NCBI RefSeq assembly: GCF_006345805.1
Contig: NC_043011.1
Location: 64,926,464 to 64,990,463, forward strand
From: Octopus sinensis
Lineage: Eukaryota
Direction of reading: 5' to 3'
DNA length: 64,000 bases
Shown piece after piece: positions 2,283 to 56,922 of the stretch (its first letter is position 1; every line of letters starts with the position of its first letter). The notes below the pieces were generated by a model. It was not told where the DNA came from and made no database searches. It worked only from the letters and a program-made list of their open reading frames with translations. The position numbers and the translations under genes were made by a program.

Positions 2283-2323
2283 ATGAAAGTTGCTATAAGC
2301 ATGTGTTTACTCATTCTGTGTCG
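2283..2323 (+). pseudogene. Cluster gene 0 exon 1, signal peptide MKVAISMCLLILC(R)
   Basis: 13 codons + 2 nt then GTAACT donor; homologous in length, phase and sequence to 19968-20008. Confidence 0.65.
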
Positions 2324-4819
2324 GTAACTCTATTGAACATTGAATTTTTCCCACAAATTACCATACAATCTTCACACAGTGAGAGCGTATGATTTCTTTC
2401 ACAACCATATGTACAAAGACTAACATTGAAAACTCCGAAACACATACTCATTCACACACACAAGCACATAAACAAGTAACGAACACACACGCTGTGTCTG
2501 TTTGTCTCCCTTTCCACGTGTATATGAGTGGGCATGTGTATGTGTGAGTGTATTTATGTTTGCAAGTGCGTGCATTTATTAAATAATGCATCATGTTTTT
2601 CAAAAAATACGTTCCTATTATTGCTTGTTCGTTTCCTTTTTGTAACTGCGTAAATGTACAAGATATATTGTGGAACTGTTATTTTGACTATTTGTGTATA
2701 TTTATCGACCCATGAGAAACATCTACACCGTCGGATTCTCCTTGAACAACCTTTCAGCATCCCACCCATGACGAACTGATGCTAGCCGTGAAGTGATTTT
2801 AGTGCTACTAAGAAATTTAATGTTAACATAATTTATTTCACACGCACACGTACAGGCACACTCACTTACACACACACACATATATATATATAAATGGAAA
2901 TTCCGTCTGTCCGTCTGCCTGTTATCATCTAGTTGCCCAAACCATGGCAGCGATATTCACCAACATTCGTATACATATTGAAATGACATATCATTCAATT
3001 ATAGGCTAATAGCCTTTTAAAAAAATTGATAATAGACTACAGGGTTTGGGTTATTATATAATAAAATGAGAGGTGTGCAATAGACTTAGATTCAGAGAAA
3101 TGTGGCATAACGGGTGTGGTTGACATCAGGGAAAGAGAGGAGACAGGAAGAGAAAGACACACAGGGAATGTGTGTGTGAGAGAAAGAGAGAGAGAGAGAG
3201 AGAGAGCGACAGGCAGGGACACATCCATATATACGAAAGAGAATTCCATTGTACGGATGTATGTGTGTGTGTGGCCGCGCCTATCTTCCCTATGCATTCG
3301 AAAACAATGTTGCCTATTTTGACGTATGCGGTATTTGGACAACTACCATATAAACTCTATTTTCATTTACATATTTATATTACAAAAAGTTTACGTTATA
3401 ATCTTTTCTATAAGTCAACTATTGTAAATACTTTATATCACAACGACAACGACAACGACGTCAATTTTCTGTATAATCATACACCTAAAAGTCATCCACT
3501 TTTCTATGTTATGAGGAAATAGTCACGTTCTCTCTCTCACATGCACACGCGCACGCGCTCATTTATAAAAATAGGAAGTATGTATATGTATTTATGTATG
3601 TGTATATGAAAGATGTGTGTATGTGTAAGATAGAAAACCATCTTCCGTTTTTCTTGCAGAAACACTAAAATCTCCTTCCCAAACATCCATTATCATCTCA
3701 CCAAAAAGCTAAAAATTCACAATGTTTCACATTTAGCTTTATTGAAACCGGGGAAATTTCTCAAGAAATGATGTCGTTTACCTGTTGTTTCAAGCATGTT
3801 GGTTTTTCTGGTTGTGGTCCGAACTTCGTTTTGTCTGCTATTTCAGTACAATTCTACGCATAAATAAAAATTGTAAAAAAGGTTAGAAAATAAGTAATTG
3901 CAGTGTGGGCGGGAGAATTCCAAATTTTGAGCATGTCTTTTCTGGGCGAAATCGCATTAATCTCCATATATACGATAAAACAATACGTACTTTGTGATCC
4001 TTCTTATGAACAGAATTAAAATTGCATGTAAACCAACGCAAATTCTGCCCTTCCCTTTCCGTTTTAAACAAACAAAACTTCCATTACACCAGTAATACAT
4101 TTCTGATTCAAGCTGTAAGTGAAGAACAAATAATACTATATGGGTCAGCAATATATATCGGGCAGCGCCGGGACACATTGCTAATGTGAGTGTGTATATG
4201 TATATCTATCTATCTATCTATCTATCTATCTATCTGTCTATATCTACTATCTATCTATCTATCTATCTATCTATCTATCTATCTATCTATAAATATATAT
4301 ATCTATCTGTCTGTCTATATATAATATATAGACAGATAGACACCTTTATATATATATATATATTATATTATATATATATATATATATATATATGTATGAA
4401 AAGGTGTCTTGAAAGTTCTGACAGCCAAATCCACTTACAAGATTTCGGTCGGCGTGAGGATGTAGTAAAAGAGACGTGCCCAAGTTGTGCCACTCACTCG
4501 GACTTAGAATGAATTATGCAATTGGGAAATAAGCCTTTCATCACACAGCCTCGCAAAACGAGAATGGAGAATTGGAACAGGACAGCGTAAAGAAGAGCAA
4601 TGACTGGGGAGAAGTCTTCACAAGGAAAGACGAATTGCAGGAACTGATAAGGATAAGAAAAAAAGATACAAAGTTGCATGAGAAAAAAATATGTTGAGCT
4701 TGAAACAGGAAAATTAAATTATTAGTAAATATTTTAATTATAATAAATACGAAAGGGATAAGAGGTACACTAATACATGGAAGGAAATTTTTAAACACAT
4801 TTTCTTCGTGTAGACTATC

Positions 4820-4985
4820 ATTATAATAATAATAATAATTATTATTATTATTATTAGTAGTAGTAGTAGTAGTAGTAGTAGTAGTAGTAGTAGTAGAGGT
4901 AGTGGTAGTAGTAGTAGTAGTAGTAGTAGTAGTAGTAGTAGTAGTAGTAGTAGTAGTAGTAGTGATAGTAGTAGTAGTTGTAGTT
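4820..4985. repeat. (TAA/TTA)n and (TAG)n microsatellites; tail/target of adjacent LINE fragment
   Basis: Directly visible. Confidence 0.9.
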
Positions 4986-4989
4986 ATAG

Positions 4990-5186
4990 CAGCGCCTTCT
5001 GAGGCTGGTGATGTACTACAATGTCAATTGTTACTACCAGTGAACTAAGGTAGCACCTCTTAGTTTATCGAGCACCTGCCGCGGTTCCAAGCATTGCTGT
5101 TTTGTGCAAGTCTTCCACCCTTATTGCAGACCCTATTTGCACGTTTTACTCGAGATTTTTGCTCACTATTCCTAGGGCTCCGACAA
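4990..5186 (-). mobile_element. 3' end of an RLE-type (R4/Dong-like) LINE, family beta, heavily 5'-truncated
   Basis: Minus strand reads IVGALGIVSKNLE*NVQIGSAIRVEDLHKTAMLGTA, the C-terminus of RLE-type ORFs, followed by a (CTA)n tail. Confidence 0.7.
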
Positions 5187-5278
5187 TTAATTATTATTAT
5201 TATTATTATTATTATTATTATTATTATTATTATTATTATTATTATAAATATTATTATTATTATTATTAATATTATTAT

Positions 5279-54190: not shown

Positions 54191-55399
54191 GTACATTATA
54201 TTAATTTACAAAATGTCATTAATATTACCATCATTACTATTATCATTACCACTATTGCTACTTATCATTATTATTATTATTAATAACACTAATACGAGCA
54301 AAGCAATATATGCATCACACGCGTTAGCAACATATAGCAAAAACAGAACAACAATAGTACTACAGTACCATGCAAAGCATTAAAGGTTTGCATATACATA
54401 TAAACGGAAAAATAAAGCATTTGGTTTACATGATATTAAGTTCCACAGGTGTATAAAATGTAGATGCGAGTGCAGTCTATAATTTCAACTGACACAAATA
54501 CAGTATTACGTTCAGAAATAGTTAAGAATCGAACGCTAAAATATGATTGGCCTGTAGATTTAAATTTAAATTTCAATTGTCTTCGTGACGGTTGGTTTGT
54601 TAAGAAACACCCACACACGCACACATGCAAACGTGCGCCCACACATACATACACAGACAAACCACAACACAAGATATACCCCCCCCCCCCACACAAATGT
54701 TTACATACAAATCTACTCACATATATCCATAGAAATGCATATATGCAAGCACACAGACATCTATACCCAGTCGATGTAAGTTATTATCACACTTTACATA
54801 ATTAAAATAACACCGTATATTTTGTAAACAATTTATCGTGCTACTGAAACTTCTAGATAGTCACAATTTCGACTGCGTTCCCATTCAAACTTTCACTAAT
54901 AACAATCACAGCATGGGAAAACTACACCAACATACACACACACACACACACACACACACACACACCACACACACACACACACACACCACCCGCATACATC
55001 CATAACATATATACACTCGCATGCACTGCATCTGCAAACATTCGCATATCATATTCTATTTAAATATGTATTTATGTATTCATACGTATAAGAAAAAACA
55101 TATACACATATTCCACCTATGAATATACATATACATATAAATGCACATACACATACATATACATAAACATTTCGACATATCCACATATATTTTACGAAAA
55201 TACCAAATACATGTCTGCCCACCAAATGACGTATAAATACATAACAATATGTTAACGAAATTACAATTAATTAAGATATAAGTAAATTATAAGTTAATTA
55301 TAAATTAATAAGGGCTTTTACTTAAAAAAATAAAATAAAATAAAATAAAATAAAATAAAAAAATAAATAAGAATAAATAAAATAAATGAATAAATAAAT

Positions 55400-55800
55400 A
55401 AATTAATATATATTTATATTAATATATTAATATATTTATATTTATTTATATTCTTTTATACATATTGTACTATTGTATCATATTACTCCTTCATGTACAC
55501 TGTTTTGTTCTATATTATTATGTTTGACCTTAATGTTCATATGTAGTGGTTTAATAAATTATGTGATTAGGTATTCTCTCGTAGTTGATAATTGATTTAG
55601 ATGTATTTCTCCATTTTCTTATTTTATATTATTAATTTGTGGTAAACGTTTTACCTCTGCCCAAATAATACAGTAAATGAATTAATTGCATCGCAATTCT
55701 TAACATTTATGTATTAACTTTGTTGAGTACTTCACTAGCAGTATATTGGATATAAGTTTCCCATGGAGGGTTGCATTTACAACCCCTATCTCAATTATAA
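55400..55800 (+). mobile_element. Inverted fragment of pLTR family delta
   Basis: Reverse complement of 47030-47430 and 53580-53770. Confidence 0.7.
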
Positions 55801-56274
55801 CTGTATATATATATATATATATATATATATATATATATATATATATATATATATATATTATATATATATATATATAATCTATATATATATATATATATAT
55901 GTATATATATATATATATATATATAAATATACATGTATATATATGTATATATGTATGTATGTATGTATGTATGCATGTATAATTTATGTATGTATGTATG
56001 TATGTATGTATGTATGCATGTATGTATGTATGTATGTATTCATGTATATATTTACGTATGTATGTATGTATGTATCTGAGTGCATACGATAAATATATAG
56101 AAACAGTGAGAGGATAGAGAGAGAAATAATGCGAGTAAATGGCATATTGAATGTGATGACTTATTGCGGACACCCAATATTTAGTCCCTGCTTAAAATTC
56201 AATCTCCTTCATTTCAAAGTAGCTGAAGCCAATTTCAAATCAGTCACATTAAGCAAGCTACTTTTGATTTTCAG

Positions 56275-56363
56275 GCGTCTGGAAATGCTGGAGCACTGCT
56301 TTCGCCAAATTTCCATGAGGTGCAGCTCATACTATCATCAATTAACAGAGAAACTGTGCGTTC
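56275..56363 (+). CDS. Cluster gene 2 exon B4: RLEMLEHCFRQISMRCSSYYHQLTEKLCV
   Basis: TTTTGATTTTCAG acceptor (phase 2), C|GTAAGA donor (phase 1); homolog of B1/B2. Confidence 0.85.
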
Positions 56364-56812
56364 GTAAGAAACCTTTCGTACATCATTTGAGTTGGTTGCG
56401 ACGAGCTTAGCTCTCTTGAATAACTTTGTCGCTTTATTCTAATGTGAATTACTTTAAAATATGGACCCTTGCCAACTTAAAAGAATGTTTTTTATGCAAG
56501 TCCACATTTAATATGTCGAGGTAACACCAAATCCTGGTTATTTAAACATGACTTCTGATGGTAAATTTTATATTCAAGTGGATACGATTCATGGGTTATT
56601 GAAACCTCCATATAATGTTAGCGTCCGCTTAAATTGATTTAATGGGGAAGGGAAATGTATCACTTTTAATATTTAACTAATCGTTAATAGCTAGAACAAA
56701 TATACGGTTTACAACATGAACGCAAATTAAACTATCTGTCCTAAGTGATATTGCATTATTTAGCTTATCTGTTACCAAAATTAAGAAATATCATGCCTTT
56801 AATTTATTGCAG

Positions 56813-56922
56813 AAACACTATCAGCCGCAAAAAAGGCGTTGGCAACGTTCATTACGATCTCAAGCTGCATGTATCTGGTGCTTTTGATCCAGTATGGTTT
56901 GATGGTATTGAGATTCATCTAA
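56813..56922 (+). CDS. Cluster gene 2 terminal exon, GPI/TM-like: (Q)TLSAAKKALATFITISSCMYLVLLIQYGLMVLRFI*
   Basis: TTTATTGCAG acceptor in phase with B4; hydrophobic tail; AATAAA ~20 nt after stop. Confidence 0.75.

Follow-up and report, generated by a model that had tools for sequence, protein, structure and literature searches.

A probable Octopus-restricted family of short-exon genes for small six-cysteine proteins, with a module that weakly resembles the RGM N-domain

Cephalopod genomes hold a few large lineage-specific gene expansions, which are tied to neural and sensory novelty. Among described cysteine-rich surface proteins, the Ly6/uPAR family is a functional analogue of the genes treated here, with short multi-exon genes for a small disulfide-rich module, a signal peptide and a glycosylphosphatidylinositol (GPI) signal, and with tandem expansion, fast evolution, and single- and multi-module forms. 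However, its module is a beta-rich three-finger fold with 8-10 cysteines, and no sequence or structural relation to it was found in this study. GFRalpha and GAS1 are GPI-anchored, all-helical, and cysteine-rich. RGM proteins are GPI-anchored, and their N-domain (RGM_ND) is a three-helix, three-disulfide bundle that binds the fingers of GDF5 and BMP2 (PMC7354924). Structures of RGM N-domains include 4UHY, 4UI0 and 6Z3H. The DNA analyzed here is a stretch of 64,000 nucleotides from Octopus sinensis, hereafter the window, located at C15:64926464-64990463 of a 2.72-Gb assembly of 13,516 contigs. An original prediction, made from the letters of the window, proposed a tandem cluster of genes for small GPI-anchored six-cysteine proteins. 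We find that the window is likely the distal end of a tandem array belonging to an Octopus-restricted gene family. It contains an intact two-module gene (g2), an intact one-module gene (g3), and a decayed copy (g1).

The proposed exons were checked by translating their coordinates and reading the flanks for an AG acceptor, a GT donor, the phase and an open frame. The recurring short exons are genuine, with AG acceptors, GT donors, compatible phases and open assembled frames in the g2 exons and in the B and last exons of g3. The spacing C-x7-C-x16-C-x8-C-x6/7-C-x11-C holds exactly in all three modules of the window, and the exons encode, as predicted, small six-cysteine proteins of secreted type that end in a hydrophobic tail. 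Hidden Markov models (HMMs) built from the three A-exon and three B-exon peptides match those exons alone in the six-frame translation of the window, with E values from 1e-17 to 1e-22, and the next-best match has E ~0.1. In a further comparison, A- and B-exon HMMs gave E values of 1e-13 to 1e-16 for the proposed exons, far above chance. The individual exon calls fared unevenly. Signal exons at 19956 and, as a relic, at 2283 were retained, but the one at 48691 is replaced by 49317-49356. The A exons at 28872 and 23200 were kept, while the alternative at 23165 was dropped and the true start of the one called at 51101 is 51115. B exons at 25815, 31959 and 56275 were confirmed, but the relic proposed at 45462 possesses one cysteine and has no HMM or tblastn support. 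The last exons at 34470 and 56813 stand, and the one at 9571 is homologous but has a premature TAA. Instead of three intact genes, only g2 and g3 are intact, and g1 consists of two damaged exons. Gene models built on phase-2 donors and on the acceptors further upstream, at 23165 and 51101, were ruled out by the phase-1 rule of the family and by the junctions of the orthologues. In the DNA comparison within the window, g3 displays no similarity to the other two genes. No fourth gene was found beyond 56922, where the HMM matches at 60420 and 60887 are at chance level (E ~0.1) and lack the cysteine patterns.

The gene plan was read from about 30 family loci outside the window. The basic family gene is composed of four short exons with fixed sizes and phases. 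The first exon, of 37-40 nucleotides (nt), encodes MK and about ten hydrophobic residues plus one nucleotide, and ends in phase 1 at a G/GTAAG-type donor (the slash marks the splice site). The A exon is about 100 nt long and encodes C-x7-C-x6-[YF]P-x3-PD-x2-[YF]C, always followed by a phase-2 GTA donor, and the B exon of 86-89 nt encodes R-L-x2-[FY]-x2-C-x6/7-C-x11/12-C and leaves in phase 1. A and B exons together make up one six-cysteine module of about 60 residues. The last exon, of about 86-110 nt, encodes a short spacer with many small residues, followed by a hydrophobic end; those of 86 nt finish with LNSxLLAVxVxxIF and the stop codon. In general, small residues (e.g. NSA, SAA, DAT) and a spacer precede a hydrophobic run of 15-20 residues that reaches the stop or ends close to it. 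Two neighboring genes at C15:64.87 and 64.91 Mb both have exon sizes of 37/100/89/86 nt. Since the A-B pair is phase-symmetric (1-1), it was multiplied inside genes to give 2, 3, 4 and 9 modules, and whole genes would also have been copied in tandem.

The g2 gene is a single two-module gene, not two genes, with the exon order signal-A-B-A-B-tail. Its coding sequence of 486 nt is open and gives a protein of 161 amino acids (aa) with two modules. All exons of the three genes lie on the + strand. Exon 1 (19968-20004, 37 nt) encodes the signal peptide MKTAICICVVVL plus 1 nt and ends in phase 1 as in the relatives, with a donor that reads T/GTAGGT; an in-frame ATG upstream at 19956 is a possible alternative start. 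The resulting junction, VVLCVAAD, agrees with the junction in P0006, a protein described below. Exon 2 (23200-23299) is the first A exon, A1, with C-x7-C-x16-C and YPxxxPDxxYC; it is 100 nt long as in the relatives and is matched by the A-exon HMM at E 1.5e-14. Exon 3 (25815-25900) is B1, with RxxLFxxC-x6-C-x11-C, entered in phase 2 and left in phase 1 (B-exon HMM E 6e-15). These are followed by A2 in exon 4 (28872-28962, A-exon HMM E 9e-13) and B2 in exon 5 (31959-32044, B-exon HMM E 6e-14). Exon 6 (34470-34555) encodes a small-residue spacer and a hydrophobic, GPI-signal-like tail that ends with LNSILLAVLGPTLS and the stop codon (tail HMM E 4e-18). It is 86 nt long, the same size as in the relatives at C15:64.87 and 64.91 Mb. 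A protein search with a first g2 model of 119 aa gave no match.

The two halves of g2 are related at the DNA level. A2 is 69% identical to A1 in an alignment that runs into the downstream intron, and B1 and B2 with their flanking introns share 65% identity over 332 nt. The tail of a long interspersed nuclear element (LINE) ORF2, with its C-terminal zf-RVT domain, lies on the - strand at 32428-33150 in the intron between B2 and the last exon, and a shorter zf-RVT copy, also on the - strand, occupies the equivalent place at 26369-26743 in the intron between B1 and A2. The presence of zf-RVT copies in both introns indicates that the A-B unit was duplicated along with its intron content. The protein P0006 (171 aa, O. 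bimaculoides, UniProt A0A0L8GPX5) is a colinear two-module counterpart of g2, 56% identical to it, with 12 of the 12 module cysteines kept. In a tree of the modules, the first module of g2 pairs with the first of P0006 (95/87), the second with the second (99/97), and g3 pairs with the O. bimaculoides protein P0001 (99/98). The one-to-one pairing of the g2 and P0006 modules shows that the internal duplication of g2 is older than the species split.

The g3 gene has an open coding sequence of 336 nt for a protein of 111 aa with one module, and exon sizes of 40/97/89/110 nt. Exon 1 (49317-49356) encodes the signal peptide MLEFFVIISALIA plus 1 nt, with a G/GTGAGT donor, and is the first exon used by the RefSeq orthologue. 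This orthologue is P0001 (LOC128249882, O. bimaculoides, 111 aa, "uncharacterized protein"), which was retrieved with a profile of the full-length models and has the same 40/97/89/110 exon sizes, conserved splice sites, and a first exon of the 49317 type. Exon 1 of g3 is identical to the start of P0001 in 12 of 14 residues, and its region is 83% DNA-identical to the orthologous O. bimaculoides locus. Exon 2 (51115-51211) is a divergent A exon without the PD motif (A-exon HMM E 1.4e-10), with the same acceptor in the orthologue, ttttag/GT. Exon 3 (56275-56363) is the B exon (B-exon HMM E 4e-14), 89 nt long as in the orthologue, and exon 4 (56813-56922) encodes a spacer with LSAAKK and a hydrophobic tail 64% identical to that of P0001. 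The rejected signal exon at 48691 would need phase 2, against the family rule of a 37-40 nt first exon that leaves in phase 1. The corresponding O. bimaculoides DNA, which can be aligned, carries a 1-nt indel directly behind the ATG and shows GC at the place of the donor GT.

The two genes contribute modules that have diverged widely: identity among the modules of the window is only about 20-37%, and between species it is 56-67% at a synonymous divergence (dS) of 0.27. The g3 protein and P0001 are 67% identical with all six module cysteines kept, at dS 0.27 and a nonsynonymous divergence (dN) of 0.18. The resulting dN/dS of 0.66 shows relaxed or mixed constraint rather than proof of positive selection, and counts against our interpretation. 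In O. bimaculoides, a one-module gene of the family, LOC106875519 (P0014, 150 aa), precedes the g3 orthologue by 3.5 kb (L051:1-6481). The 14.8 kb that separate g2 from g3 contain nothing equivalent, which indicates a gene gain or loss between the species.

The g1 copy is read as a relic, a g2-type duplicate in decay whose module exons are gone. Its first (signal) exon, 2283-2319, comprises 12 codons plus 1 nt and reads MKVAISMCLLIL; the region is 68% DNA-identical over 226 nt to that of the g2 first exon, and the phase-1 donor is altered to GTCGGT. The last (tail) exon, 9571-9656, aligns together with its surroundings to the last exon of g2 and its flanks, at 70% DNA identity over 382 nt (E 2e-40), and a premature TAA at 9624-9626 ends the translation within the hydrophobic tail. 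No A or B exon was detected in 2323-9570 by HMM and DNA searches. The signal of P0006 matches the first exon of g1 in 11 of 13 residues, closer than that of g2, and on this likeness the decayed O. sinensis copy, rather than g2, may be the orthologous partner of P0006. Between the two g1 exons lies a LINE-type reverse transcriptase fragment on the - strand (5972-7945, over two frames) that does not belong to the family; Pfam RVT_1 scores 75.6 bits in its part at 5972-7104 (-). The module exons may have been lost in connection with this fragment.

The extent of the family was estimated with a 35-nt A-exon pattern, CCN-N9-CCN-GAY-N6-TWY-TGY-RR-GTA, which stands for P-x3-PD-x2-[YF]C and the donor. 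A total of 46 matches were found in the genome, against one for the reversed control. Fifteen of them lie on the + strand of contig C15 at 64.42-64.96 Mb, and the last two of these are A1 and A2 of g2, at C15:64949731 and C15:64955394. Six more are located at 63.59-63.75 Mb of the same contig, 13 at 28.63-28.74 Mb and four at 28.01-28.05 Mb of contig C6, and seven on three unplaced scaffolds that repeat C15 sequences. The remaining match, isolated at C15:61.6 Mb, has no cysteine pattern and is probably due to chance. The pattern misses divergent A exons, that of g3 among them, which makes 45 a lower bound. Genome searches with module peptides gave many weak matches, all within a few zones of C15 and C6, and the family signature was found at more than 25 further loci. 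The three scaffolds (C9533, C11551 and C13508) carry A exons identical to C15 copies across the 35-nt pattern, and are probably uncollapsed haplotigs or recent duplicates that inflate the family counts.

Annotated relatives were collected by a HMMER scan of 27 A-exon peptides against 1.84 billion representatives (E<=1e-3). It returned 19 proteins, including one low-complexity false positive and two unnamed short fragments. All named matches come from O. bimaculoides, O. vulgaris or O. sinensis and are called "uncharacterized" or "hypothetical", and no family member beyond Octopus was found among the 1.84 billion representatives. The annotated relatives carry 1, 2, 3, 4 or 9 modules. On this point the original prediction, of a lineage-expanded, fast-diverging tandem family, is supported.

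The longest relative is P0003 (O. bimaculoides LOC128248155, 540/546 aa), with nine A-exon matches and eight complete modules by the strict cysteine pattern. The cluster at C6:28.63-28.74 Mb (L045-L048) is an alternation of A and B exons spaced 3-6 kb apart. P0003 corresponds to this cluster, which indicates that the cluster is one long multi-module gene; as the O. sinensis protein XP_036359395.1 (147 aa) spans only two modules, the gene is probably under-annotated. In the O. vulgaris models P0002 and P0004, the B exon of one gene is joined to the next A exon, or the modules of four neighbors are strung together, and the joins skip the signal and tail exons. These are either read-through or chimeric predictions, or true multi-module transcripts. 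A subfamily at C15:64.42-64.64 Mb (L033-L036, e.g. L034:4123) has a longer terminal exon, with a B-like part and an in-frame C-x7-C-x12-C, and ends in CGMTF at the stop without a hydrophobic tail. Judged from its sequence, it may consist of secreted variants that are not anchored.

The same data bear on the question whether these exons are expressed genes at all, or instead open frames that arose by chance or are in decay, or repeat pieces that resemble exons. The clear decay of g1 and a region rich in microsatellites and LINE fragments speak for such an explanation, as does the point, which counts against our interpretation, that splicing is predicted from conservation together with RefSeq and other gene models of the sister species. 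However, O. sinensis and O. bimaculoides agree in exon sizes, phases, splice sites and every cysteine at a dS of 0.27 and a dN/dS below 1, the orthologues have RefSeq models, several with multiple isoforms, the 46 pattern matches against one control have an intact donor each time, and a confident AlphaFold model was obtained for the module. We therefore regard non-expression as very improbable.

The original prediction was less accurate as to novelty. Orthologues in O. bimaculoides and O. vulgaris are already annotated as "uncharacterized", and one is labelled "GDNF/GAS1 domain", although g2 and g3 are absent among the annotated O. sinensis proteins in the protein searches made. No paper was found on the LOC identifiers of the family or on an RGM-type expansion in octopus. 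The family itself, with its exon plan, size, apparent restriction to Octopus, and RGM_N-like module standing alone or in tandem, had not been described.

The original prediction had further likened the cysteine spacing in the core of the module to that of the RGM N-domain and of neuritin. The likeness to the RGM N-domain is the best and the only recurrent database signal, but it is below significance per module and is limited to the C3-x8-C4-x7-C5 core (cysteines are numbered within the module). Pfam RGM_N (PF06535) was found in nine of 20 relatives at E<10, and no other family recurs. It exceeds the gathering score of 24.2 bits in P0004 (37.9 bits, four stretches) and P0008 (29.1 bits, two stretches), with the P0008 alignment covering profile positions 6-56 of 70; in the seven further relatives E ranges from 1.7e-4 to 3. 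In the opposite direction, a family profile of 40 rows searched against 177,635 distinct PDB sequences gave three matches, all of them RGMB N-domains (E 0.15-0.26). An HMM of 35 modules scores human RGMB at 20.1 bits, the octopus RGM at 13.8 and human RGMA at 13.2, and two octopus GFRalpha-like domains at 4.1 and -2.0. When the module alignment was compared by hhalign with an alignment of three RGM_N sequences, a score of 22.0 was obtained over 28 columns (P 2.3e-4); the column-shuffle null was 8.8 +/- 2.1 with a maximum of 20.5, and none of 200 shuffles reached 22.0.

The aligned core starts at an acidic residue ahead of C3, includes C-x8-C-x7-C and extends into the third helix. The spacing C3-x8-C4-x6/7(-9)-C5 is present in 35 of 35 modules, and C-x8-C-x7-C in the octopus RGM, human RGMA and human RGMB. 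Both groups share domains of about 60-70 residues with six cysteines, the central C-x8-C-x7-C, an all-helical model, and parent proteins with a GPI-type C-terminus. They also share a conserved acidic residue three positions before C3 and a hydrophobic residue four positions after C5; the latter is the position of RGMB Leu103 (PMC7354924), kept in kind in the family. The match is the reciprocal best, though weak, in the Pfam and PDB sequence searches. Taken together, the likeness to RGM_N appears reciprocal, specific and consistent with the fold, with each single test below significance.

Several observations weigh against a relation to RGM. The Pfam scan of the g2 and g3 models gave no match at all, and RGM_N has no match in their orthologue-level relatives P0006 and P0001. 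Per module, RGM_N scores are about 10-20 bits, with about 26-36 columns aligned around C3-C4-C5. The outer cysteines are spaced differently, C-x7-C-x16-C in the family and C-x4-C-x22/23-C in RGM, and the distance between C5 and C6 is 11-12 in the family but about 23-26 in RGM. A comparison of the small profile A5 with the single octopus RGM by hhalign was not significant (E 0.14), and PDB sequence searches with the small profiles A2 and A5 gave nothing, or a spurious CGRP-receptor match at E 1.1. Family proteins consist of signal, modules and tail only, with no RGM_C/partial vWD domain and no GDPH autocleavage site. A true octopus RGM with GDPH is encoded at C2:164242613, the single RGM locus above the cut-off in the RGM_N genome scan. 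Its N-domain lies within one exon, without an intron at the A/B position, whereas the family module is split by a phase-2 intron after C3 and occurs alone or in tandem up to nine, with at least 46 A exons against the single RGM locus. Because the outer cysteine spacings differ and RGM_C is absent, the module is called RGM_N-like and is not filed as RGM.

AlphaFold2, run with the 40-row family alignment and P0009 as target, gave a model that contains only helices, with a mean predicted local distance difference test score (pLDDT) of 89.1 and 96-97 over the module. Because MAFFT had placed B-exon fragments on the A region, the alignment for folding was built without them. A single-sequence AlphaFold model of P0001 was unusable (pLDDT 45). 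The modules would form a three-disulfide helical bundle, although the disulfide pairing is unreadable from the model. A Foldseek search of the PDB, with a query model that still bore the signal and tail helices, gave no significant match (best E 6.7), which is a further point against kinship with RGM; RGMB N-domain chains hold ranks 2 and 4 (E 7.2-7.6) with template modelling scores of 0.44-0.45 normalised to the target.

These results can also be read as convergence, the family being a de novo octopod-specific cysteine-rich helical fold in which C-x8-C-x7-C arose from disulfide-stapled helices. The sub-significant RGM_N signals per module over about 26-36 columns, the Foldseek search without a significant match, the lack of any member outside Octopus and the octopus RGM N-domain without an intron at the A/B position all fit this view. 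It accounts less well for RGM_N as the sole recurrent Pfam family, the RGMB N-domain as the sole PDB sequence match, an hhalign score reached by 0 of 200 shuffles, and the fact that RGMs too are GPI-anchored (PMC7354924). Convergence is thus a serious alternative, but we consider it rather unlikely.

A relation to GDNF-receptor/GAS1-type domains has also to be weighed, by which the modules would be divergent members of that group and the proteins miniature GFRalpha-like GPI-anchored co-receptors. In its favor, UniProt names P0006 "GDNF/GAS1 domain-containing protein", a label that was not reproduced here, and hhalign of the module profile with one octopus GFRalpha-like domain gave 17.5 (P 0.0026), which indicates that the family may belong to a broader cysteine-rich helical class and not to RGM_N proper. 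The two groups are also alike in having a cysteine-rich all-helical extracellular domain, often in tandem, in GPI-anchored co-receptors. However, about 10 cysteines are spread over the roughly 87 positions of a GDNF domain, against six over about 60 in the family. Pfam scans of 23 family proteins found GDNF (PF02351) in none of them at E<=10, the genome scan with GDNF gave matches only on contigs C16, C10 and C27 and at no family locus, and the family HMM scores the octopus GFRalpha-like domains at 4.1 and -2.0 bits, compared with 13-20 for RGM N-domains. A GDNF/GAS1 origin is improbable on these grounds.

The neuritin (CPG15) part of the original prediction did not survive. Neuritin does have a similar plan, being small and secreted with six cysteines and a GPI-type tail, but a sequence match is undetectable in either direction. 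Pfam NRN1 (PF15056) matches 0 of 23 family proteins at E<=10, and the NRN1 genome scan has no family locus, its best matches lying elsewhere at E ~2. That the proteins are neuritin homologues is thus extremely improbable. DUF19 had been named as well, and nothing points there, RGM_N alone having recurred in the Pfam scans.

With the module as an RGM_N-like domain, a role can be proposed for the proteins. The products would enter the secretory pathway by the short signal peptide, the modules would fold as disulfide-locked helical bundles, and a GPI anchor, or failing that a C-terminal membrane helix, would hold the proteins on the outer cell face. GPI anchoring is predicted from the tail sequences. 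The signal was judged by eye, and g3 ends with R-F-I behind its hydrophobic stretch, as a tail that spans the membrane might too, which tells against an anchor of the GPI type. One or several exposed modules might then bind other extracellular proteins, and the protein might act as a ligand co-receptor or trap, or as a surface recognition tag. Since the module is most like the RGM N-domain, which binds BMP/GDF fingers, an extracellular protein-binding role would be the most likely one; we put forward such a binding function as a tentative possibility. If the analogy with RGM_ND holds, BMP/GDF-type ligands are possible partners. Equally, the speed at which the modules diverge suggests a repertoire for recognition or interaction that is exposed to changing pressure.

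A more far-reaching and doubtful proposal is that the ligand-binding N-domain of an RGM-like ancestor became a fast-diversifying repertoire private to octopus, with at least 46 modules in O. sinensis, GPI-anchored and present singly or in strings of up to nine. As speculative is the function that would go with it, either as tunable traps or co-receptors for BMP/TGF-beta ligands or as a combinatorial surface code in the nervous system, suckers or reproduction. If true, the repertoire would join the known octopus expansions of protocadherins and chemotactile receptors. Should the tie to the BMP-binding RGM domain be real, it would give a testable hypothesis of a private layer of growth-factor or guidance signalling in octopus. 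If the RGM tie is false, the family offers a clear case of a disulfide-rich fold that is young and evolves fast. In either case it adds very small surface proteins that are missed by standard open reading frame tracks and by some annotations, and its phase-symmetric modular exon design explains both the single-module genes and the nine-module gene. The corrected g2 and g3 models, the assignment of g1 as a pseudogene, and the DNA pattern of the family can be used for re-annotation and expression studies.

As to the remaining sequence, the window has a G+C content of about 32% and contains many microsatellites and LINE fragments. Two pairs of inverted repeats, 14226-14630/17561-17956 (98% over 183 nt) and 18238-18456/18775-18993 (94% over 219 nt), border microsatellite-rich DNA between g1 and g2.

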